DNA of 64,000 nucleotides, taken from contig NC_043014.1 in the NCBI RefSeq assembly GCF_006345805.1, positions 10,974,001 to 11,038,000 on the forward strand, written 5' to 3'. The DNA is from Octopus sinensis (Eukaryota). The number at the start of each line of letters is the position of its first letter. Within the stretch, counting starts at the first letter, position 1. Under the pieces are notes generated by a model. The model made no database searches. It saw nothing but the letters and a program-made list of their open reading frames with translations, and was not told where the DNA came from. Positions 1 through 60,624 of the stretch are shown one piece after another. The position numbers were made by a program, and so were the translations under genes.

Positions 1-3000
1 GTAAAAGCCTTGCCAAAACTGACCTCGCCTGTGCTTGTACCACATTAAAAGCCCTAAGTCCACTTGGCTGAGCAGTTGGTGTTAGGAAGGGAATCCAGCT
101 GTAAAAGACTTGCCAAAACTGACCTCGCCTGTGCTTGTACCACATTAAAAGCCCTAAGTCCACTCAGCTGAGCAGTTGGTGTTAGGAAGGGCATCCAGCT
201 GTAAAAGCCTTGCCAAAACTGACCTCGCCTTTGCTTGTAACATTAAAACAGTAAGTCCACTTGGTTGAGCAGTTGGTGTTTGGAAGGGCATCCAGCTGTA
301 AAAGCCTTGCCAAAACTGACCTGCCTGTGCTTGTACCACATTAAAAGCAGTAAGTCCACTTGGTGAGCAGTTGGTGTTAGGAAGGGCATCCAGCTGTAAA
401 AGCCTTGCCAAAACTGACCTCGCCTGTGCTTGTACCACATTAAAAGCAGTAAGTCCACTTGGTTGAGCAGTTGGTGTTAGGAAGGGCATCCAGCTGTAAA
501 AGCCTTGCCAAAACTGACCTCGCCTGTGCTTGTACCACATTAAAAGCAGTAAGTCCACTTGGGAGCAGTTGGTGTTAGGAAGGGCATCCAGCTGTAAAAG
601 CCTTGCCAAAACTGACCTCGCCTGTGCTTGTACCACATTAAAAGCCCTAAGTCCACTCAGCTGAGCAGTTGGTGTTAGGAAGAGCATCCAGCTGTAAAAG
701 CCTTGCCAAAACTGACCTCGCCTGTGCTTGTACCACATTAAAAGCAGTAAGTCCACTCAGCTGAGCAGTTGGTGTTAGGAAGGGCATCCAGCTGTAAAAG
801 CCTTGCCAAAACTGACCTCGCCTGTGCTTGTACCACATTAAAAGCCCTAAGTCCACTTGGCTGAGCAGTTGGTGTTAGGAAGGGAATCCAGCTGTAAAAG
901 ACTTGCCAAAACTGACCTCGCCTGTGCTTGTACCACATTAAAAGCCCTAAGTCCACTCAGCTGAGCAGTTGGTGTTAGGAAGGGCATCCAGCTGTAAAAG
1001 CCTTGCCAAAACTGACCTCGCCTGTGCTTGTATTACATTAAAAGCAGTAAGTCCACTTGGTTGAGCAGTTGGTGTTAGGAAGGGCATCCAGCTGTAAAAG
1101 CCTTGCCAAAACTGACCTCGCCTGTGCTTGTACCACATTAAAAGCCCTAAGTCCACTCAGCTGAGCAGTTGGTGTTAGGAAGGGCATCCAGCTGTAAAAG
1201 CCTTGCCAAAACTGACCTCGCCTGTGCTTGTACCACATTAAAAGCCCTAAGTCCACTCAGCTGAGCAGTTGGTGTTAGGAAGAGCATCCAGCTGTAAAAG
1301 CCTTGCCAAAACTGACCTCGCCTGTGCTTGTACCACATTAAAAGCAGTAAGTCCACTCAGCTGAGCAGTTGGTGTTAGGAAGGGCATCCAGCTGTAAAAG
1401 CCTTGCCAAAACTGACATCGCCTGTGCTTGTACCACATTAAAAGCCTAAGTCCACTTGGCTGAGCAGTTGGTGTTAGGAAGGGAATCCAGCTGTAAAAGA
1501 CTTGCCAAAACTGACCTCGCCTGTGCTTGTACCACATTAAAAGCCCTAAGTCGACTCAGCTGAGCAGTTGGTGTTAGGAAGGGCATCCAGCTGTAAAAGC
1601 CTTGCCAAAACTGACCTCGCCTGTGCTTGTACCACATTAAAAGCAGTAAGTCCACTTGGTTGAGCAGTTGGTGTTAGGAAGGGCATCCAGCTGTAAAAGC
1701 CTTGCCAAAACTGACCTAGCCTGTGCTTGTACCACATTAAAAGCCCTAAATCCCCTTAGCAGAGCAGTTGGTGTTAGGAAGGGCATCCAGCTGTAAAAGC
1801 CTTGCCAAAACTGACCTCGCCTGTGCTTGTACCACATTAAAAGCAGTGAGTCCACTCAGCTGGGCAGTTGGTGTTAGGAAGGGCATCCAGCTGTAAAAGC
1901 CTTGCCAAAACTGACCTCGCCTTGCTTGTACCACATTAAAAGCAGTAAGTCCACTCAGCTGAGCAGTTGGTGTTAGGAAGGGCATCGAGTTGTAAAAGCC
2001 TTGACAAAACTGACCTCGCTGTGCTTGTACCACATTAAGCAGCAGTAAGTCCACTCAGCTGAGCAGTTGGTGTTAGGAAGGGCATCCAGCTGTAAAAGCC
2101 TTGCCAAAACTGACCTCGCCTGTGCTGTACCACATTAAAAGCAGTAAGTCCACTCAGCTGAGCAGTTGGTGTTAGGAAGGGCATCCGGCTGTAAAAGCCT
2201 TGCCAAAACTGACCTCGCCTGTGCTTGTACCACATTAAAAGCAGTAAGTCCACTCAGCTGAGCAGTTGGTGTTAGGAAGGGCATCCAGCTGTAAAAGCCT
2301 TGCCAAAACTGACCTCGCTGTGCTTGTACCACATTAAAAGCAGTAAGTCCACTCAGCTGAGCAGTTGGTGTTAGGAAGGGCATCCAGCTGTAAAAGCCTT
2401 GCCAAAACTGACCTCGCCTGTGCTTGTACCACATTAAAAGCAGTAGTAAGTCCACTCAGCTGAGCAGTTGGTGTTAGGAAGAGCATCCAGCTGTAAAAGC
2501 CTTGCCAAAACTGACCTCGCCTGTGCTTGTACCACATTAAAACAGTAAGTCCACTCAGCTGAGCAGCTGGTTGGTGTTAGGAAGGGCATCCAGCTGTAAA
2601 AGCCTTGCCGAAAACTGACCTCGCCTGTGCTTGTACCACATTAAAAGCAGTAAGTCCACTCAGCTGAGCAGTTGGTGTTAGGAAGAGCATCCAGCTGTAA
2701 AAGCCTTGCCAAAACTGACCTCGCCTGTGTTGTACCACATTAAAAGCAGTAAGTCCACTCAGCTGAGCAGTTGGTGTTAGGAAGGGCATCAGCTGCTGTA
2801 AAAGCGTTGCCAAAACTGACCTCGCCTGTGCTTGTACCACATTAAAAGCCTAAGTCCACTTGGCTGAGCAGTTGGTGTTAGGAAGGGAATCCAGCTGTAA
2901 AAGACTTGCCAAAACTGACTTCGCCTGTGCTTGTACCACATTAAAACCCCTAAGTCCACTCAGCTGAGCAGTTGGTGTTAGGAAGGCATCCAGCTGTAAA

Positions 3001-6000
3001 AGCCTTGCCAAAACTGACCTCGCCTGTGCTTGTACCACATTAAGCAGCAGTAAGTCCACTGGCTGAGCAGTTGGTGTTAGGAAGGGCATCCAGCTGTAAA
3101 AGCCTTGCCAAAACTGACCTCGCCTGTGCTTGTACCACATTAAAAGCAGTAAGTCCACTTGGCTGAGCAGTGGTGTTAGGAAGGGCATCCAGCTGTAAAA
3201 GCCTTGCAAAACTGACCTCGCCTGTGTGTTGTACCACATTAAAAGCCCTAAGTCCACTCAGCTGAGCAGTTGGTGTTAGGAAGAGCATCCAGCTGTAAAA
3301 GCCTTGCCAAAACTGACCTCGCCTGTGCTTGTACCACATTAAAAGCAGTAAGTCCACTCAGGAGCAGTTGGTGTTAGGAAGGGCATCCAGCTGTAAAAGC
3401 CTTGCCAAAACTGACCTCGCCTGTGCTTGTAACCACATTAAAAGCCCTAAGTCCACTTGGCTGAGCAGTTGGTGTTAGGAAGGGAATCCAGCTGTAAAAG
3501 ACTTGCCAAAACTGACCTCGCCTGTGCTTGTACCACATTAAAAGCCCTAAGTCCACTCAGCTGAGCAGTTGGTGTTAGGGGAAGGCATCCAGCTGTAAAA
3601 GCCTTGCCAAAACTGACCTCGCCTGTGCTTGTATTACATTAAAAGCAGTAAGTCCACTTGGTTGAGCAGTTGGTGTTAGGAAGGGCATCCAGCTGTAAAA
3701 GCCTTGCCAAAACTGACCTCGCCTGTGCTTGTACCACATTAAAAGCAGTAAGTCCACTTGGTTGAGCAGTTGGTGTTAGGAAGGGCATCCAGCTGTAAAA
3801 GCCTTGCCAAAACTGACCTCGCCTGTGCTTGTACTACATTAAAAGCAGTAAGTCCACTTGGTTGAGCAGTTGGTGTTAGGAAGGGCATCCAGCTGTAAAA
3901 GCCTTGCCAAAACTGACCTCGCCTGTGCTTGTACCACATTAAAAGCAGTAAGTCCACTTGGCTGAGCAGTTGGTGTTAGGAAGGGCATCCAGCTGTAAAA
4001 GCCTTGCCAAAACTGACCTCGCCTGTGCTTGTACCACATTAAAAGCAGTAAGTCCACTTGGTTGAGCAGTTGGTGTTAGGAAGGGCATCCAGCTGTAAAA
4101 GCCTTGCCAAAACTGACCTCGCCTGTGCTTGTACCACATTAAAAGCCCTAAGTCCACTCAGCTGAGCAGTTGGGGTTAGGAAGAGCATCCAGCTGTAAAA
4201 GCCTTGCAAAACTGACCTCGCCTGTGCTTGTACCACATTAAAAGCAGTAAGTCCACTCAGCTGAGCAGTTGGTGTTAGGAAGGGCATCCAGCTGTAAAAG
4301 CCTTGCCAAAACTGACCTCGCCTGTGGCTTGTACCACATTAAATGCCCTAAGTCCACTTGGCTGAGCAGTTGTTGTGTTAGGAGGGCATCCAGCTGTAAA
4401 AGCCTTGCCAAAACTGACCTCGCCTGTGCTTGTACCACATTAAAAGCCCTAAGTCGACTCAGCTGAGCAGTTGGTGTTAGGAAGGGCATCCAGCTGTAAA
4501 AGCCTTGCCAAAACTGACCTCGCCTGTGCTTGTACCACATTAAAAGCAGTAAGTCCACTGGTTGAGCAGTTGGTGTTAGGAAGGGCATCCAGCTGTAAAA
4601 GCCTTGCCAAAACTGACCTCGCCTGTGCTTGTACCACATTAAAAGCAGTGAGTCCACTCAGCTGGGCAGTTGGTGTTAGGAAGGCATCCAGCTGTAAAAG
4701 CCTTGCCAAAACTGACCTCGCCTGTGCTTGTACACATTAAAAGCAGTAAGTCCACTCAGTGAGCAGTTGGTGTTAGGAAGGGCATCGAGTTGTAAAAGCC
4801 TTGACAAAACTGACCTCGCCTGTGCTTGTACCACATTAAAAGCAGTAAGTCCACTCAGCTGAGCAGTTGGTTAGGAAGGGCATCCAGCTGTAAAAGCCTT
4901 GCCAAAACTGACCTCGCCTGTGCTGTACCACATTAAAAGCAGTAAGTCCACTCAGCTGAGCAGTTGGTGTTAGGAAGGGCATCCGGCTGTAAAAGCCTTG
5001 CCAAAACTGACCTCGCCTGTGCTTGTACCACATAAAAGCAGTAAGTCCACTCAGCTGAGCAGTTGGTGTTAGGAAGGGCATCCAGCTGTAAAAGCCTTGC
5101 CAAAACTGACCTCGCCTGTGCTTGTACCACATTAAAAGCAGTAAGTCCACTCAGCTGAGCAGTTGGTGTTAGGAAGGGCATCCAGCTGTACAAGCCTTGC
5201 CAAAACTGACCTCGCTTGTGCTTGTACCACATTAAAAGCAGTAAGTCCACTCAGCTGAGCAGTTGGTGTTAGGAAGAGCATCCAGCTGTAAAAGCCTTGC
5301 CAAAACTGACCCGCCGCCTGTGCTTGTACCACATTAAAAGCAGTAAGTCCACTCAGCTGAGCAGCTGGTGTTAGGATGGGCATCCAGCTGTAAAAGCCTT
5401 GCCAAAACTGACCTCGCCTGTGCTTGTACCACATTAAAAGCAGCAAGTCCACTCAGCTGAGCAGTTGGTGTTAGGAAGGGCATCCAGCTGTAAAAGCGTT
5501 GCCAAAACTGACCTCGCCTGTGCTTGTACCACATTAAAAGCCCTAAGTCCACTTGGCTGAGCAGTTGGTGTTAGGAAGGGAATCCAGCTGTAAAAGACTT
5601 GCCAAAACTGACCTCGCCTGTGCTTGTACTACATTAAAAGCAGTAAGTCCACTTGGTTGAGCAGTTGGTGTTAGGAAGGGCATCCAGCTGTAAAAGCCTT
5701 GCCAAAACTGACCTCGCCTGTGCTTGTATTACATTAAAAGCAGTAAGTCCACTTGGTTGAGCAGTTGGTGTTAGGAAGGGCATCCAGCTGTAAAAGCCTT
5801 GCCAAAACTGACTCGCCTGTGCTTGTACCACATTAAAAGCAGTAAGTCCACTTGGTTGAGCAGTTGGTGTTAGGAAGGGCATCCAGCTGTAAAAGCCTTG
5901 CCAAAACTGACCTCGCCTGTGCTTGTATACAATTAAAAGCAGTAAGTCCACTGGTTGAGCAGTTGGTGTTAGGAAGGGCATCCAGCTGTAAAAGCCTTGC

Positions 6001-9000
6001 CAAAACTGACCTCGCCTGTGCTTGTACCACATTAAAAGCAGTAAGTCCACTTGCTGAGCAGTTGGTGTTAGGAAGGGCATCCAGCTGTAAAAGCTTGCCA
6101 AAACTGACCTCGCCTGTGCTTGTACCACATTAAAAGCAGTAAGTCCACTTGGTTGAGCAGTTGTGTGTTAGGAAGGGCATCCAGCTGTAAAAGCCTTGCC
6201 AAAACTGACCTCGCCTGTGCTTGTACCACATTAAAAGCCCTAAGTCCACTCAGCTGAGCAGTTGGTGTTAGGAAGAGCATCCAGCTGTAAAAGCCTTGCC
6301 AAATGACCATCGCCTGTGCTTGTACCACATTAAAAGCAGTAAGTCACTCTCGCTGAGCAGTTGGTGTTAGGAAGGGCATCCAGCTGTAAAAAGCCTTTGC
6401 CCAAAACTGACCCTCGCAGTCTGTGCTTGGTACCACATTAAACTGCCCTAAGTCCACTTGGTCTGTCAGCAGGTTGGTGTTAGGAAGGGCATCCAGCTGT
6501 AAAAGCCTTGCCAAAACTGACCTCGCCTGTGCTTGTACCACATTAAAAGCCCTAGTAGACCCTCAGCTGAGCAGCTTGGTGTTAGGAAGGGCTACACCCA
6601 GCTGTAAAAGCCTTGCCAAAACTGACCTCGCCTGTGCTTGTACCACATTAAAAGCAGTAAGTCCACTTGGTTGAGCAGTTGGTGTTAGGAAGGGCATCCA
6701 GCTGTAAAAGCCTTGCCAAAACTGACCTCGCCTGTGCTTGTACCACATTAAAAGCAGTGAGTCCACTCAGCTGGGCAGTTGGTGTTAGGAAGGGCATCCA
6801 GCTGTAAAAGCCTTGCCAAAACTGACCTCGCCTGTGCTTGTACCACATTAAAAGCAGTAAGTCCACTCAGCTGAGCAGTTGGTGTTAGGAAGGGCATCGA
6901 GTTGTAAAAGCCTTAACAAAACTGACCTCGCCTGTGCTTGTACCACATTAAAAGCAGTAAGTCCACTCAGCTGAGCAGTTGGTGTTAGGAAGGGCATCCA
7001 GCTGTAAAAGCCTTGCCAAAACTGACCTCGCCTGTGCATGTACCACATTAAAAGCAGTAAGTAGTCCACTCAGCTGAGCAGTTGGTGTTAGGAAGGGCAT
7101 CCAGCTGTAAAAGCCTTGCCAAAACTGACCTCGCCTGTGCTTGTACCACATTAAAAGCAGTAAGTCCACTCAGCTGAGCAGTTGGTGTTAGGAAGGGCAT
7201 CCAGCTGTAAAAGCCTTGCCAAAACTGACCTCGCCTGTGCTTGTACCACATTAAAAGCAGTAAGTCCACTCAGCTGAGCAGTTGGTGTTAGGAAGGGCAT
7301 CCAGCTGTAAAAGCCTTGCCAAAACTGACCTCGCTTGTGCTTGTACCACATTAAAAGCAGTAAGTCCACTCAGCTGAGCAGTTGGTGTTAGGAAGAGCAT
7401 CCAGCTGTAAAGCCTTGCCAAAACTGACCTCGCCTGTGCTTGTACCACATTAAAAGCACAGTAAGTCCAACTCAAGCTGAGAAGCTGGTGTTAGGATGGG
7501 CATCCAGCGTAACTAAGCTGCCAAAATTGCACCATCCCTGTCGCCTCCTGTACTTTTAACCTCCTAAAAGCAAAGCAAGTCCACTCAGCTGAGCAGTTGG
7601 TGTTAGGAGGGCATCGAGTTGTAAAAGCCTGCAAAAATACTGCCACTCGCCTGTGCTTGTACCACATTAAAAGCAGTAATGTCCACTCAGCTGAGCAGTT
7701 GGTGTTAGGAGGGCATCCAGCTGTAAAAGCCTTGCCAAAACTGACCGTCGCCTGTGCTTGTACCACATTAAAAGCAGTAAGTCCACTTGGTGAGCAGTTG
7801 GTGTTAGGAAGGGCATCCAGCTGTAAAAGCCTTGCCAAAACTGACCTCGCCTGTGCTTGTACCACATTAAAAGCCCTAAGTCCACTCAGCTGAGCAGTTG
7901 GTGTTAGAAGAGCATCCAGCTGTAAAAGCCTTGCCAAAACTGACTCGCCTGTGCTTGTACCACATTAAAAGCAGTAAGTCCACTCAGCTGAGCAGTTGGT
8001 GTTAGGAAGGGCATCCAGCTGTAAAAGCCTTGCCAAAACTGACCTCGCTGTGCTTGTACCACATTAAATGCCCTAAGTCCACTTGGCTGAGCAGTTGGTG
8101 TTAGGAAGGGCATCCAGCTGTAAAAGCCTTGCCAAAACTGACCTCGCCTGTGCTTGTACCACATTAAAAGCCCTAAGTCGACTCAGCTGAGCAGTTGGTG
8201 TAGGAAGGGCATCCAGCTGTAAAAGCCTTGCAAAACTGACCTCGCCTGTGCTTGTACCACATTAAAAGCAGTAAGTCCACTTGGTTGAGCAGTTGGTGTT
8301 AGGAAGGGCATCCAGCTGTAAAAGCCTTGCCAAAACTGACCTCGCCTGTGCTTGTACCACATTAAAAGCAGTGAGTCCACTCAGCTGGGCAGTTGGTGTT
8401 AGGAAGGGCATCCAGCTGTAAAAGCCTTGCCAAACTGACCTCGCCTGTGCTTGTACCACATTAAAAGCAGTAAGTCCACTCAGCTGAGCAGTTGGTGTTA
8501 GGAAGGGCATCGAGTTGTAAAAGCCTTGACAAAACTGACCTCGCCTGTGCTGTGTTACCACATTAAAAGCCCAGTAAGTCCACTCAGCTGAGCAGTTGGT
8601 GTTAGGAAGGGCATCCAGCTGTAAAAGCCTTGCCAAAAAACCTGACCTCGCCTGTGCATGTACCACATTAAAGCAGTAAGTCCACTCAGCTGAGCAGTTG
8701 GTGTTAGGAAGGGCATCGGCTGTAAAAGCCTTGCCAAAACTGACCTCGCCTGTGCTTGTACCACATTAAAAGCAGTAAGTCCACTCAGCTGAGCAGTTGG
8801 TGTTAGGAAGGGCATCCAGCTGTAAAAGCCTGCCAAAACTGACCTCGCCTGTGCTTGTACCACATTAAAAGCAGTAAGTCCACTCAGCTGAGCAGTTGGT
8901 GTTAGGAAGGGCATCCAGCTGTACAGCCTTGCCAAAACTGACCTCGCTTGTGCTTGTACCACATTAAAAGCAGTAAGTCCACTCAGCTGAGCAGTTGGTG

Positions 9001-12000
9001 TTAGGAAGAGCATCCAGCTGTAAAAGCCTTGCAAAACTGACCTCGCCTGTGCTTGTACCACATTAAAAGCAGTAAGTCCACTCAGCTGAGCAGCTGGTGT
9101 TAGGATGGGCATCCAGCTGTAAAAGCCTTGCCAAAACTGACCTCGCCTGTGCTTGTACCACATTAAAAGCAGCAAGTCCACTCAGCTGAGCAGTTGGTGT
9201 TAGGAAGGGCATCCAGCTGTAAAAGCGTTGCCAAAACTGACCTCGCCTGTGCTTGTACCACATTAAAAGCCCTAAGTCCACTTGGCTGAGCAGTTGGTGT
9301 TAGGAAGGGAATCCAGCTGTAAAAGACTTGCCAAAACTGACCTTGCCTGTGCTTGTACTACATTAAAAGCAGTAAGTCCACTTGGTTGAGCAGTTGGTGT
9401 TAGGAAGGGCATCCAGCTGTAAAAGCCTTGCCAAAACTGACCTCGCCTGTGCTTGTATTACATTAAAAGCAGTAAGTCCACTTGGTTGAGCAGTTGGTGT
9501 TAGGAAGGGCATCCAGCTGTAAAAGCCTTGCCAAAAACTGACCTCGCCTGTGCTTGTACCACATTAAAAGCAGTAAGTCCACTTGGTTGAGCAGTTGGTG
9601 TTAGGAAGGGCATCCAGCTGTAAAAGCCTTGCCAAAACTGACCTCGCTGTGCTTGTACTACATTAAAAGCAGTAAGTCCACTTGGTTGAGCAGTTGGTGT
9701 TAGGAAGGGCATCCAGCTGTAAAAGCCTTGCCAAAACTGACCTCGCCTGTGCTTGTACCACATTAAAAGCAGTAGTAAGTCCACTTGGCTGAGCAGTTGG
9801 TGTTAGGAAGGGCATCCAGCTGTAAAAGCCTTGCCAAAACTGACCTCGCCTGTGCTTGTACCACATTAAAAGCAGTAAGTCCACTTGGCTGAGCAGTTGG
9901 TGTTAGGAAGGGCATCCAGCTGTAAAAGCCTTGCCAAAACTGACCTCGCCTGTGCTTGTACCACATTAAAAGCCCTAAGTCCACTCAGCTGAGCAGTTGG
10001 TGTTAGGAAGAGCATCCAGCTGTAAAAGCCTTGCCAAAACTGACCTCGCCTGTGCTTGTACCACATTAAAAGCAGTAAGTCCACTCAGCTGAGCAGTTGG
10101 TGTTAGGAAGGGCATCCAGCTGTAAAAGCCTTGCCAAAACTGACCTCGCCTGTGCTTGTACCACATTAAATGCCCTAAGTCCACTTGGCTGAGCAGTTGG
10201 TGTTAGGAAGGGCATCCAGCTGTAAAAGCCTTGCCAAAACTGACCTCGCCTGTGCTTGTACCACATTAAAAGCCCTAAGTCGACTCAGCTGAGCAGTTGG
10301 TGTTAGGAAGGGCATCCAGCTGTAAAAGCCTTGCCAAAACTGACCTCGCCTGTGCTTGTACCACATTAAAAGCAGTAAGTCCACTTGGTTGAGCAGTTGG
10401 TGTTAGGAAGGGCATCCAGCTGTAAAAGCCTTGCCAAAACTGACCTCGCCTGTGCTTGTACCACATTAAAAGCAGTGAGTCCACTCAGCTGGGCAGTTGG
10501 TGTTAGGAAGGGCATCCAGCTGTAAAAGCCTTGCCAAAACTGACCTCGCCTGTGCTTGTACCACATTAAAAGCAGTAAGTCCACTCAGCTGAGCAGTTGG
10601 TGTTAGGAAGGGCATCGAGTTGTAAAAGCCTTGACAAAACTGACCTCGCCTGTGCTTGTACCACATTAAAAGCAGTAAGTCCACTCAGCTGAGCAGTTGG
10701 TGTTAGGAAGGGCATCCAGCTGTAAAAGCCTTGCCAAAACTGACCTCGCCTGTGCATGTACCACATTAAAAGCAGTAAGTCCACTCAGCTGAGCAGTTGG
10801 TGTTAGGAAGGGCATCCGGCTGTAAAAGCCTTGCCAAAACTGACCTCGCCTGTGCTTGTACCACATTAAAAGCAGTAAGTCCACTCAGCTGAGCAGTTGG
10901 TGTTAGGAAGGGCATCCAGCTGTAAAAGCCTTGCCAAAACTGACCTCGCCTGTGCTTGTACCACATTAAAAGCAGTAAGTCCACTCAGCTGAGCAGTTGG
11001 TGTTAGGAAGGGCATCCAGCTGTACAAGCCTTGCCAAAACTGACCTCGCTTGTGCTTGTACCACATTAAAAGCAGTAAGTCCACTCAGCTGAGCAGTTGG
11101 TGTTAGGAAGAGCATCCAGCTGTAAAAGCCTTGCCAAAACTGACCTCGCCTGTGCTTGTACCACATTAAAAGCAGTAAGTCCACTCAGCTGAGCAGCTGG
11201 TGTTAGGATGGGCATCCAGCTGTAAAAGCCTTGCCAAAACTGACCTCGCCTGTGCTTGTACCACATTAAAAGCAGCAAGTCCACTCAGCTGAGCAGTTGG
11301 TGTTAGGAAGGGCATCCAGCTGTAAAAGCGTTGCCAAAACTGACCTCGCCTGTGCTGTACCACATTAAAAGCCCTAAGTCCACTTGCTGAGCAGTTGGTG
11401 TTAGGAAGGGAATCCAGCTGTAAAAGACTTGCCAAAACTGACCTCGCCTGTGCTTGTACTACATTAAAAGCAGTAAGTCCACTTGGTTGAGCAGTTGCAG
11501 TTGGTGTTAGGAAGGGCATCCAGCTGTAAAAGCCTTGCCAAAACTGACCTCGCCTGTGCTTGTACCACATTAAAAGCAGTAAGTCCACTTGGCTGAGCAG
11601 TTGGTGTTAGGAAGGGCATCCAGCTGTAAAAGCCTTGCCAAAACTGACCTCGCCTGTGCTTGTACCACATTAAAAGCAGTAAGTCCACTTGGTTGAGCAG
11701 TTGGTGTTAGGAAGGGCATCCAGCTGTAAAAGCCTTGCCAAAACTGACCTCGCCTGTGCTTGTACCACATTAAAAGCAGTAAGTCCACTTGGCTGAGCAG
11801 TTGGTGTTAGGAAGGGCATCCAGCTGTAAAAGCCTTGCCAAAACTGACCTCGCCTGTGCTTGTACCACATTAAAGCCCTAAGTCCACTCAGCTGAGCAGT
11901 GTTGGTGTTAGGAAGAGCATCCAGCTGTAAAAGCCTTGCCAAAATTGACCTCGCCTGTGCTTGTACCACATTAAAAGCAGTAAGTCCACTCAGCTGAGCA

Positions 12001-12740
12001 GTTGGTGTTAGGAAGGGCATCCAGCTGTAAAAGCCTTGCCAAAACTGACCTCGCCTGTGCTTGTACCACATTAAAAGCCCTAAGTCCACTTGGCTGAGCA
12101 GTTGGTGTTAGGAAGGGCATCCAGCTGTAAAAGCCTTGCCAAAACTGACCTCGCCTGTGCTTGTACCACATTAAAAGCAGTAAGTCCACTTGGTGGAGGT
12201 TGAGTTGTGTTGTGTAGGAAGGGCATCCAGCTGAAAAGCCTTGCCAAAACTGACCTTGCCTGTTTTGCTTGTACCACATTAAAAGCCCTAAGTCCACTTG
12301 GCAGAGCAGTTGGTGTTAGGAAGGGCATCCAGCTGTAAAAGCCTTGCCAAAACTGACCTCGCCTGTGCTTGTACCACATTAAAAGCAGTAAGTCCACTCA
12401 GCTGAGCAGTTGGTGTTAGGAAGGGCATCCAGCTGTAAAAGCCTTGCCAAAACCGACCTTGCCTGTGCTTGTACCACATTAAAAGCAGTAAGTCCACTCA
12501 GCTGAGCAGTTGGTGTTAGGAAGGGCATCCAGCTGTAAAAGCCTTGCCAAAACTGACCTCGCCTGTGCATGTACCACATTAAAAGCCCTAAGTCCACTTG
12601 GCAGAGCAGTTGGTGTTAGGAAGGGCATCCAGCTGTAAAAGCCTTGCCAAAACTGACCTCGCCTGTGCTTGTACCACATTAAAAGCCCTAAGTCCACTTG
12701 GCAGAGCAGTTGGTGTTAGGAAGGGCATCCAGCTGTAAAA
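1..12740. repeat. Tandem array of a 100-bp unit, about 127 monomers, left end beyond the window
   Basis: Unit ctgtgcttgtaccacattaaaagcagtaagtccactcagctgagcagttggtgttaggaagggcatccagctgtaaaagccttgccaaaactgacctcgc repeated head to tail; exact 100-bp spacing at 9866-11366. Confidence 0.99.
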
Positions 12741-12841
12741 ATTCCTGCCGAAACAGTTGCAGAAGTCTGGTGCAGGTTTCTGCCTAGCCAAACCATCCCT
12801 CCCATGTCAGCATGGAAGGCAAATGTTAAACGATGATGATT
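12741..12841 (+). mobile_element. 3' end of a SINE (family B) continuing directly from the last satellite monomer
   Basis: tctggtgcagg...ccatccctcccatgtcagcatggaaggcaaatgttaaacgatgatgat matches the 3' end and (GAT)n tail of dispersed family-B copies. Confidence 0.85.
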
Positions 12842-13036
12842 AATCCCTGCTGTTCAGAAGTGAGTATGATTATGGCTGGAATACTTGACCAAAAGGGCTC
12901 CTGACCAAGAGCTGCTTCTATGCAAGGCTTCAATACTTCTCCACAATGGTAATACAAATATTTAAGTTAATTTACCACAGTCATTACTGATTTAATGACT
13001 CCCACAATAAAGCAGTACTGTTACTTACTGAAGTCA

Positions 13037-13073
<37 letters not shown>

Positions 13074-13162
13074 ATAACGGTTAAAATTAATTAATTAATA
13101 ATTAATAATTTTACCAAGTAGTTCGATATGTTAAAAGAACCATTATTGGTAAACTTATACAA

Positions 13163-13351
13163 AAATTCTATAATTGTGAGTATAATTATAATTAGAGTTC
13201 AGCAAAAATTTGCTTCACCACAAAACTTGCTGTCTGGGAGATTTTCTTATGGCAATGAAATAGTTAGTTTTAACTGCTATTTCTAAATTTCGGTATGTGG
13301 TGAAGCAAATTTTTTCTGAACCCTAATTATAATTATACTCGAAATTATAGA

Positions 13352-13355
<4 letters not shown>
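13163..13355. repeat. Inverted repeat with about 60-bp arms between (TA)n tracts (foldback/MITE-like)
   Basis: aaattctataattgtgagtataattataattagagttcagcaaaaatttgcttcaccaca (13163-13222) versus its near reverse complement at 13296-13355. Confidence 0.8.
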
Positions 13356-13390
<35 letters not shown>

Positions 13391-13491
13391 TTCTATTTCT
13401 TATGTTTCACAAAAACATAATTTGGCCCACAAATCAAACAAGCTTTTCTTTATGAAAGAAATCAATGTTGTTACACATTGCTTTATACATA

Positions 13492-13766
13492 ACTAGCAGT
13501 ATCGCCCGGCGTTGCTCGGGTTTGTAAGGGAAATAACTCTATAAGCAGTTTTAGAGAGTTACTTCCCTTATATAATAGCAAAAATGCACTAAAAATGGAA
13601 ATAAATGATGGTAAATTATTTTTAAAATCGTAGACTCATCGTAGACGCACGCTAATACCCAGAAGGGCTTGTGGGTAAACTGCACGGCAAAATGGGGGAG
13701 TAGTTGGGAATCTAAATCGTAGGAGACAGACACCACACAACTTCAGTTTTATATATATATATAGAT
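13492..13766 (+). mobile_element. Non-autonomous Helitron-like element
   Basis: Starts actagcagtatcgcccggcgttgctcgg and ends cacaacttcagttttatatatatatatagat; the same termini occur inverted at 34821-35216; class inferred from resemblance to non-autonomous Helitron termini. Confidence 0.6.
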
Positions 13767-13812
13767 ATTTGTCGACATTTTCTTCACTTATCCCATCTGC
13801 AGATGTTAAATC

Positions 13813-13848
<36 letters not shown>

Positions 13849-14048
13849 GTGGCAAACTGACAAAATCATTAGCACTCTGGGTGAAAAGCTTAGTGACATT
13901 TCATCCGTCTCTATGTTCTGAGTTCAAATTTCGCCAGAGTCAATAACATAAGTACCAACTGAATATAGGGGTCAATGTAATTGATTAGTCTCTTCCCCTA
14001 AAATTTCAAGCCTCATGCCTTTAGTAGAAAGGATTATTATTATTATTA

Positions 14049-60050
<46,002 letters not shown>

Positions 60051-60334: not shown

Positions 60335-60624
60335 TGACCCACCTAGTGCTGGTGCCACATAAAAAGCACCTAGTCCACAGTCTAAAGTGGTTGGCACTTG
60401 GAAGGGCATCCAACTGTAAAACCATGCCAAAAAAACTGACCCCCACCTGTGTTGGTGCCATGTAAAAAGCACTCAGTCCACTCTGCTCAGCAGGTGGTTG
60501 GTGTTTGGAAAGGCATCCAGCTGTAAAAACCTGAAGCCTGGTGCAGTCTTGTGCTTGGCCGGCTCTTGTCAAGCCACACAACCCATGCCAGCATGGAAGA
60601 CAAATGTTAAACGCTGATGATGAG
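60335..60624 (+). mobile_element. Family-B SINE with an internal duplication of the core (two units)
   Basis: Core ggaagggcatccaactgtaaa and ggaaaggcatccagctgtaaaa about 104 bp apart, followed by a normal 3' end and tail. Confidence 0.85.

Follow-up and report, generated by a model that had tools for sequence, protein, structure and literature searches.

A 21-monomer higher-order repeat within a 100-bp tandem array, probably grown from a SINE-like element in an intron of SPT16 in Octopus sinensis

Introduction

How does a tandem array that appears to lie in an intron of an essential gene come to be built of repeated blocks of 21 monomers, and where did its monomer come from? Both questions are raised by a stretch of 64,000 nucleotides from Octopus sinensis (NCBI RefSeq assembly GCF_006345805.1, contig NC_043014.1, positions 10,974,001 to 11,038,000), hereafter the window, whose left part is occupied by a 100-bp array next to exons of SPT16, a subunit of FACT. 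All coordinates are those of the window (1-64,000) and refer to the forward strand unless stated otherwise. An earlier description made from the letters alone, called here the sequence-only reading, had proposed a 21-monomer higher-order repeat (HOR) of about 2.1 kb inside the array, and had attributed it to a two-stage amplification of the alpha-satellite kind in a genic intron. The block organization is confirmed by the analysis presented here. Two other features of the locus, the apparent mobile-element origin of the monomer and the noise of the assembly, had both been overlooked. The explanation preferred here, with a probability of about 80%, is that 100 bp from the interior of a short interspersed element (SINE)-like element were expanded in tandem, giving a young, non-coding array located in a late intron of SPT16.

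Block organization of the array

A single 100-bp tandem array was detected by Tandem Repeats Finder (TRF) at 1-12740 (127.1 copies, 93% matches, 2% indels). It is cut at position 1 by the left edge of the window, and its G+C content is 48-49%, versus 33-45% in the flank. When aligned to a 100-bp consensus by a wrap-around dynamic programme, the array resolves into 127 in-register monomers (numbered 0-126), most of which are separated from the consensus by 1-6 positions, and the order in which the variant positions reappear is constant. Monomers 92-112, the cleanest stretch, were taken as the reference for 21 types, named A to U, against which all monomers could be typed; several of these types are identical within the unit (I, Q and R; D and L; F and G). 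The complete order from A to U is found three times, at monomers 34-54, 55-75 and 92-112, and a truncated copy stands between the second and the third (Table 1). To the left of the full copies there are shorter units of 8, 6, 14 and 6 monomers, every one of which opens with types A and B'. This variant B' (A at column 8, plus CC) is found in the left-hand units, and variant B (A at column 8, T at column 41, plus TG.T) in the right-hand ones.

The period was evaluated as the number of differences per 100 aligned columns at each monomer lag, within monomers 34-121. At lags 21, 37 and 58 the mean number of differences falls to 3.45, 3.12 and 2.07, respectively, the remaining lags giving 4.8-5.9 and most of them about 5.3. 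Lags 37 and 58 appear because copies 2 and 3 are 16 monomers apart (two of the junction and 14 of the truncated copy). When the monomer order was shuffled, the lag-21 mean was 5.24 (standard deviation 0.21) and none of 5000 shuffles was as low as observed; the monomers, once split and typed, come in ordered types and not in random order. In an alignment-free check, exact shared 120-, 150- and 200-mers were concentrated at offsets of 37, 58 and 21 monomers. Whole-block alignment shows the same organization: counting substitutions only, the full copies are 98.8-99.5% identical to one another (99.5% for copy 1 versus copy 3), and the truncated copy is 100% identical to types H-U of copy 3. With gaps counted, the identity of block copies is 94.1-98.7%. 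In other words, block copies are 0-17 substitutions apart per 1.4-2.0 kb, versus about 5 per 100 between neighbouring monomers. Each full copy is set apart from the others by 9-17 private substitutions, copy 2 being the most diverged. On the other hand, 0 substitutions separate the truncated copy from copy 3, which would make these two the most recent duplication. The array at 1-12740 is thus a 21-monomer (2.1-kb) block copied several times, and it shows what is generically expected of a HOR: types in a fixed order, position-equivalent monomers closer than adjacent ones, and units at least about 95% identical.

The diagnostic variants listed in the sequence-only reading were located one by one, and the coordinates given for them were right to within a few bases, with a single exception. 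The marker GGGAATCC was found at 3482, 5578, 9307 and 11408; AGTGAGTCC at 4647, 6756, 8370 and 10474; GCATCGAGTTG at 4782, 6894, 8507 and 10612; GGATGGG at 5374, 7494, 9103 and 11206; and GCAGCAAG at 5440, 9169 and 11272. The exception is GTCGAC, the SalI site, which was recovered at 4453, 8177 and 10279 but not near 6556, in noisy sequence, where the K monomer of copy 2 has ...CCCTAGTAGACCCTCAGC... in its place. In the array this hexamer occurs only at 1550, 4453, 8177 and 10279, and SalI digestion is predicted to give fragments of 2903, 3724 and 2102 bp, and no clean 2.1-kb ladder such as had been anticipated. The rearranged HORs expected in 1-3400 correspond to the four short units on the left, which end at 3392. 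A truncated HOR had also been announced, and it exists, but its place was wrong: it had been put around 7500-7900, a region largely taken up by the scrambled junction that precedes it (Table 1).

The parent dispersed element

The monomer appears to derive from a SINE-like dispersed element, and the array would then be a mobile-element-derived satellite. Two nhmmer queries, a monomer dimer and the last two monomers with the right flank (12535-12860), were run against the 51-kb flank, and about 25 related stretches were found on both strands. The unit of the array has its homologue in the interior of this dispersed element (about 25 copies), where it runs in the alignment from ...CCTGTGCTGGTGCCACATAAAAGCAC... 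to ...GGAAGGGCATCCAGCTGTAGAAAC..CTGCCAGA..GAC. The 105 bp that follow the last monomer align with the 3' domain of the dispersed copies up to a (GAT)n tail; the domain ends in ...CCAACCCATGCYAGCATGGAAAGCGGACGTTAAACGATGATGAT, with this (GAT)n tail, and unrelated sequence comes next. In addition to the copy that adjoins the array, nhmmer with a 143-bp consensus of this domain as query recovered 26 dispersed ones in 12741-64000, both strands included (for example 15593-15734, 32765-32909, 40821-40964, 46691-46834 and 58858-59001). Among the copies, homology extends from 53 to about 340 bp upstream of the common 3' end, and the longest ones (about 300-340 bp) carry 2-3 upstream units of about 66 bp. 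Variable 5' truncation, a fixed 3' end and a simple-repeat tail are consistent with the pattern of a retroposon. No known RNA families or tRNAs were detected in the window by Rfam and ARAGORN.

The closest relative of the array is a copy of the same subfamily with two 100-bp units (nhmmer score of 128.5 bits), which shares with it the unit junction (GCCAAAA..CTGACC..CCTGTG) and the type of 3' domain. Other copies have expanded with different unit lengths. For example, internal repeats of the module of 62-72 bp, present two to three times, were found by TRF at 22519, 33001, 36859 and 46547. Another example is a 25-bp array located inside or beside a further copy of the family (3' domain at 31365-31496), which is a second, independent expansion of the module of the element. 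Unit lengths of 25, 62-72 and 100 bp are therefore all found in one window; the family readily duplicates parts of itself in tandem, its largest expansion here being the 100-bp array.

Two additional repeats were noted outside this family. A second dispersed family has tRNA-like A- and B-box motifs (GCAGGAGTGGCTGTGTGGTAAG...GGTTCCGGGTTCAGTCCCACTGCGTGGCAC) at about 15500-15592 and, in reverse orientation, for example at 46480-46545; ARAGORN calls no tRNA in it. A 26-bp minisatellite (GGGGTTAAACACCATTTCGCAAAAAG, 14.7 copies, 92% matches) at 28363-28741 is not related to the 100-bp array.

The host gene and the position of the array

Minus-strand open reading frames (ORFs) at 54953-55315, 43921-44316 and 42308-42649 match the N-terminal and peptidase-M24-like domains of SPT16. 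Their best named matches are SPT16 proteins of arthropods (54-60% identity), to which an unnamed 95% match must be added. The exons were mapped by comparing joined stop-to-stop segments of the minus strand with solved structures (PDB sequence search; match to chain 9eh2_x, E = 1.6e-140), and at least 16 of them are recognisable on this strand at 14121-55315 by similarity to human residues up to 934 (Table 1). They make up most of the gene, of which neither the first nor the last exon was recognised in the window. The last of these exons ends in ...CCTGAGAGTGAA, followed by GTAAGC, a good splice donor, and human SPT16 goes on with an acidic tail of about 113 residues more. On the gene strand, a scan that recovers the internal acidic exon at 36788 found nothing D/E-rich in open frame in 1-14120; therefore, the remaining SPT16 exon or exons must be to the left of the window. 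All this argues strongly that the array sits in the SPT16 intron that follows the exon for residues 889-934, starting 1.4 kb past the donor, in agreement with the genic intron of the sequence-only reading.

The SPT16 introns in the window are dense with dispersed repeats. The only close relative that was found is the Logan contig SRR11869391_2284399 (1.8 kb), where an SPT16 exon at 1089-1421 is about 95% identical to window 43921-44316. The intron flanks of this contig can be aligned over only about 100 bp, so it comes from a related but different species. The intron that holds the array also contains, between the array and the SPT16 exon, an inverted repeat resembling a miniature inverted-repeat transposable element (13038-13387), with 67-nt arms that are 91% complementary (13156-13222 and 13296-13362), between two (TA)16 runs. 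When the array is read in the sense of SPT16 (minus strand), every monomer shows a branch-point- and acceptor-like CCTAAC...CTCAG and, 44 nt further on, a donor-like GAG/GTCAGT, and the monomers might be regarded as 127 weak, putative cryptic exons.

Table 1. Coordinates of the array, its blocks, the related repeats and the SPT16 exons in the window
Feature	Position	Strand	Evidence
100-bp array, 127 monomers, cut by left window edge	1-12740	+	TRF; wrap-around parse
Short or rearranged block variants, monomers 0-33	1-3392	+	Variant table; typing
8-monomer rearranged unit	1-793	+	Typing
6-monomer rearranged unit	794-1393	+	Typing
14-monomer rearranged unit, B'/K hybrid monomer at 1493-1592	1394-2797	+	Typing
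6-monomer rearranged unit	2798-3392	+	Typing
HOR copy 1, types A-U, monomers 34-54, 2097 bp	3393-5489	+	Parse, typing, block alignment
HOR copy 2, types A-U, monomers 55-75, 2131 bp, indel-noisy	5490-7620	+	Parse, typing, block alignment
Scrambled junction between copy 2 and truncated copy, three monomers (75-77)	7509-7822	+	Parse, typing
Truncated copy, types H-U, monomers 78-91 (14)	7823-9218	+	Typing, block alignment
HOR copy 3, types A-U, monomers 92-112, 2103 bp, cleanest	9219-11321	+	Parse, typing, block alignment
Degenerate partial last block (A, then F/D/F, H, I, J-like), monomers 113-126, to array end	11322-12740	+	Parse, typing
3' domain of SINE-like parent element, ending ...CATGTCAGCATGGAAGGCAAATGTTAAACGATGATGAT, abutting last monomer	12741-12845	+	nhmmer; alignments
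Closest relative of array, two 100-bp units, same element subfamily	60335-60623	+	nhmmer; alignment
25-bp tandem array, 33 copies (GTGCCGGTGCCACATAAAAGCGCCT, 77% matches)	30532-31343		TRF
SPT16 exon, human residues 376-417	40542-40432	-	PDB sequence search
SPT16 exon, human residues 418-439	37796-37731	-	PDB sequence search
SPT16 exon, human residues 439-471	36788-36690	-	PDB sequence search
SPT16 exon, human residues 472-505	34770-34663	-	PDB sequence search
SPT16 exon, human residues 510-539	33416-33327	-	PDB sequence search
SPT16 coding, human residues 531-645	about 30190-26322	-	PDB sequence search
SPT16 coding, human residues 645-727	about 23758-21608	-	PDB sequence search
SPT16 coding, human residues 728-832	about 20665-15912	-	PDB sequence search
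SPT16 exon, human residues 833-889	15408-15106	-	PDB sequence search
SPT16 exon, human residues about 889-934, then donor GTAAGC	about 14250-14121	-	PDB sequence search; sequence

Origin of the blocks and order of events

A three-step origin can be proposed for the array. It would have started from the tendency of the element family to duplicate a segment in tandem, which is directly visible in the window copies with 25-, 62-72- and 100-bp repeats. The 100-bp unit of one inserted copy would then have been expanded by replication slippage or by unequal sister-chromatid exchange, and the monomers of the resulting array would have drifted a few percent apart, gaining private changes. Finally, exchange between monomers many units out of register would have duplicated or deleted whole blocks; this is the process that probably lies behind the pattern observed, that is, the 21-monomer block in three full copies, one copy truncated to 14 monomers, and shorter derivatives of 6-14 monomers. 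The exchange points are marked by hybrid monomers at the block breakpoints. For example, in monomer 15 (1493-1592) the B marker (A at column 8) is joined to that of K (G at column 61), and the next monomer is L; types C-J have been removed in this way, which is what an unequal exchange between B and K would be expected to do. Another example is monomer 75, the last of copy 2 (7509-7620), a U/N hybrid where the U marker (C at column 55) is followed by the N markers (G and T at columns 96 and 99) and which contains 16 inserted bases. The two-stage amplification of the sequence-only reading is retained in part: the copying of whole blocks took place once the monomers were already divergent (98.8-100% identity versus about 5% differences), but the first stage would be the duplication inside a mobile element. 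Most likely, the array behaves like any HOR satellite or large variable number tandem repeat (VNTR), and it is tolerated because it is intronic.

Two other candidates were tried and rejected. Slippage driven by hairpins finds no support in predicted folding, since shuffled sequences fold at least as well as the monomer DNA, on either strand, and as the 25-bp unit (z = +0.9 to +1.7). The long minus-strand ORFs of the array are not taken as genes either: no homologues were found for them, and a 208-aa ORF of this kind had no match in the protein collection. By reasoning rather than computation, such frames probably persist only where indels alter the monomer length, since a 100-bp unit rotates the reading frame.

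The order of events might have been the reverse, the left-hand units of 6-8 monomers (A, B', ..., H, I) being older and the 21-mer being built by further duplication and divergence. Types J, K and L share their class of markers (CC, TG and TG.T, at columns 53-54 and 65-68) with A, B' and D, and Q and R are equal to I, which, together with the J-L markers, suggests an older internal period. The presence of B' in the left-hand units and of B in the right-hand ones can be read in the same sense; it is also the local gradient expected of neighbour-biased exchange. However, the 14-monomer unit at 1394-2797 has the B'/K hybrid and then L-P, the simplest explanation of which is a deletion within an existing 21-mer, and the lag profile has no clear secondary dip near lag 9. 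On balance, this reverse order is considered unlikely.

Less likely still is an assembly artefact. In this case the real array would be simpler, such as a regular run of 21-monomer blocks or one with fewer copies, and errors in joining or polishing the long reads would have created the block pattern or, failing that, just the truncated copy and the scrambled junction. In fact, sequence quality is uneven. There are 15-45 indel events per pair of block copies, mainly of 1 nt and in homopolymer context, and only 0-17 substitutions, which is the reverse of normal divergence and looks like the residual consensus error typical of long reads in an unpolishable repeat. Dense 1-nt indels of homopolymer type, with insertions of up to 16 bases, occur at 2390-2800, 6290-6600, 7400-7720, 8520-8720, 11420-11525 and 12127-12334, patches that probably represent unpolished long-read consensus, and the stretch 9822-11321 is free of indels. 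An artefact would account for this clustering of the noise (the first five patches), for the perfect match between the truncated copy and copy 3, and for the loss of the SalI site in the K monomer of copy 2, which falls inside a noisy stretch. However, random consensus errors cannot produce about 25 ordered marker substitutions placed 21 monomers apart; the private substitutions between the full copies mean that these are no simple duplicates made by the assembler; and the neighbouring SPT16 exons are intact. Assembly noise may nevertheless contribute part of the apparent divergence. The indels being mostly of the error type, the true identity of the blocks is probably 99% or higher, and neither the junction at 7509-7822 nor the lost SalI site should be interpreted heavily.

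Finally, it is hardly credible that the array is a functional chromatin element of the alpha-satellite kind, either centromere-associated or heterochromatin-nucleating, for which only the formal likeness of the block organization can be adduced, whereas the array lies in an intron of an essential and highly conserved housekeeping gene, shows no more than three to four block copies, has a monomer divergence of just about 5%, and consists of a monomer that is a piece of a dispersed element and whose predicted DNA structure is no more stable than that of shuffled sequence.

Some points nevertheless weigh against the interpretation preferred here, a young expansion of a SINE-like element in a late SPT16 intron. 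Between block copies there are 2 to 15 times as many indels as substitutions, so the sequence cannot be relied upon throughout, and the reads may have been wrongly joined at the 7.5-7.8 kb junction. The downstream SPT16 exons and the left end of the array lie beyond the window, so the acceptor side of the intron is unseen. The same edge affects the flanks of the array: on the right there is an element remnant, namely the 3' domain with its GAT tail, and on the left the 5' part of the element is out of view. The parent can be called no more than SINE-like, as no tRNA-like head was assigned to it and neither Rfam nor ARAGORN gave a match. Exact-pattern scans for the monomer junction and the 3' domain in metagenome contigs, prokaryotic genomes and viral contigs gave no external copies, and no second locus or species carrying the array was found in them; the strings of the element and the monomer were likewise not found in the literature searched. 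In addition, the array is taken to be most likely functionless in itself, which is an assumption.

Biological significance

The parent element could tentatively be seen as a "satellite-seeding" retroposon family, whose module containing GGTGCCACATAAAAGCACC would start arrays of different unit lengths at many sites; for the moment this generalization must be considered doubtful. If it were true, the SPT16 array would be a satellite caught at birth, with blocks forming while the monomers are still about 95% alike; the length of the array would probably vary between individuals, and the splicing or expression of SPT16 might be affected. As a hypothesis, the transcripts of this essential histone chaperone gene could be processed differently when a polymorphic insert of at least 12.7 kb occupies one of its late introns. 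The parent element, a two-unit "seed", the array, three block copies, a truncated copy and hybrid monomers are found together in 64 kb. This is a small and clean case of a block structure arising, of use for teaching or for modelling the birth of satellites. With regard to annotation, the array should be masked as element-derived. Current knowledge of satellites and centromeres is left unchanged.

Comparison with known repeat systems

The first system with which the array can be compared is the alpha satellite of primates, whose HORs also consist of an ordered multi-monomer unit repeated head to tail, with position-equivalent monomers far closer than neighbours. In alpha satellite, the monomers within a unit diverge by 20-40%. 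The differences from the octopus array are several: its monomer is unrelated and has 100 bp instead of about 171 bp; its monomers are about 5 differences per 100 apart, versus tens of percent; three full copies are present in at least 12.7 kb, versus megabases; the length of its unit is irregular (6, 8, 14 and 21 monomers); and it is intronic, with nothing pointing to a centromere. According to a published account, a HOR is generically a set of adjacent monomers that are amplified and homogenised together, the position-equivalent monomers of alpha satellite are more than 95% identical, and block-wise unequal exchange is the accepted mechanism (PMC5615363). By this generic definition the array is a HOR, but it is not of the alpha-satellite type, and the likeness drawn in the sequence-only reading holds in form only.

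A closer comparison is offered by human VNTRs. The 61-bp VNTR of Xp22.33 forms an 18-kb array with irregular HORs of 1.6 and 2.5 kb (PMC2588610). Large intronic arrays with units of more than 2 kb were described in the same survey, although not among the VNTRs shown with HORs (PMC2588610). Like the Xp22.33 type, the octopus array is euchromatic and has a short unit, a total length in the range of 10-20 kb and irregular kilobase-scale blocks in a complex arrangement; organism and sequence are different, and in the octopus the mobile-element origin can be read from the flank.

With respect to that origin, SINEs are among the many mobile-element sources of satellites, and euchromatic arrays have been stressed in reviews (PMC12692304). 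For example, a limpet satellite has been traced to Nin-SINE (PMC11121367), and further satellites derived from mobile elements are known (PMC7004042). More detailed is the case of the SINE-derived satellites of squamates (sSat), with loci of two to over a thousand units, the longer ones being more homogeneous, and with locus-specific subvariants that alternate in di- or trimeric patterns (PMC10702118). As in the octopus, the unit repeated in sSat comes from the interior of a short retroposon-like element that is dispersed. On the other hand, the octopus block comprises 21 monomers and not 2-3, its parent is at most a putative SINE, and the host is not a reptile. The SPT16 array is therefore another example of two known kinds of repeat, the higher-order repeat and the mobile-element-derived satellite.

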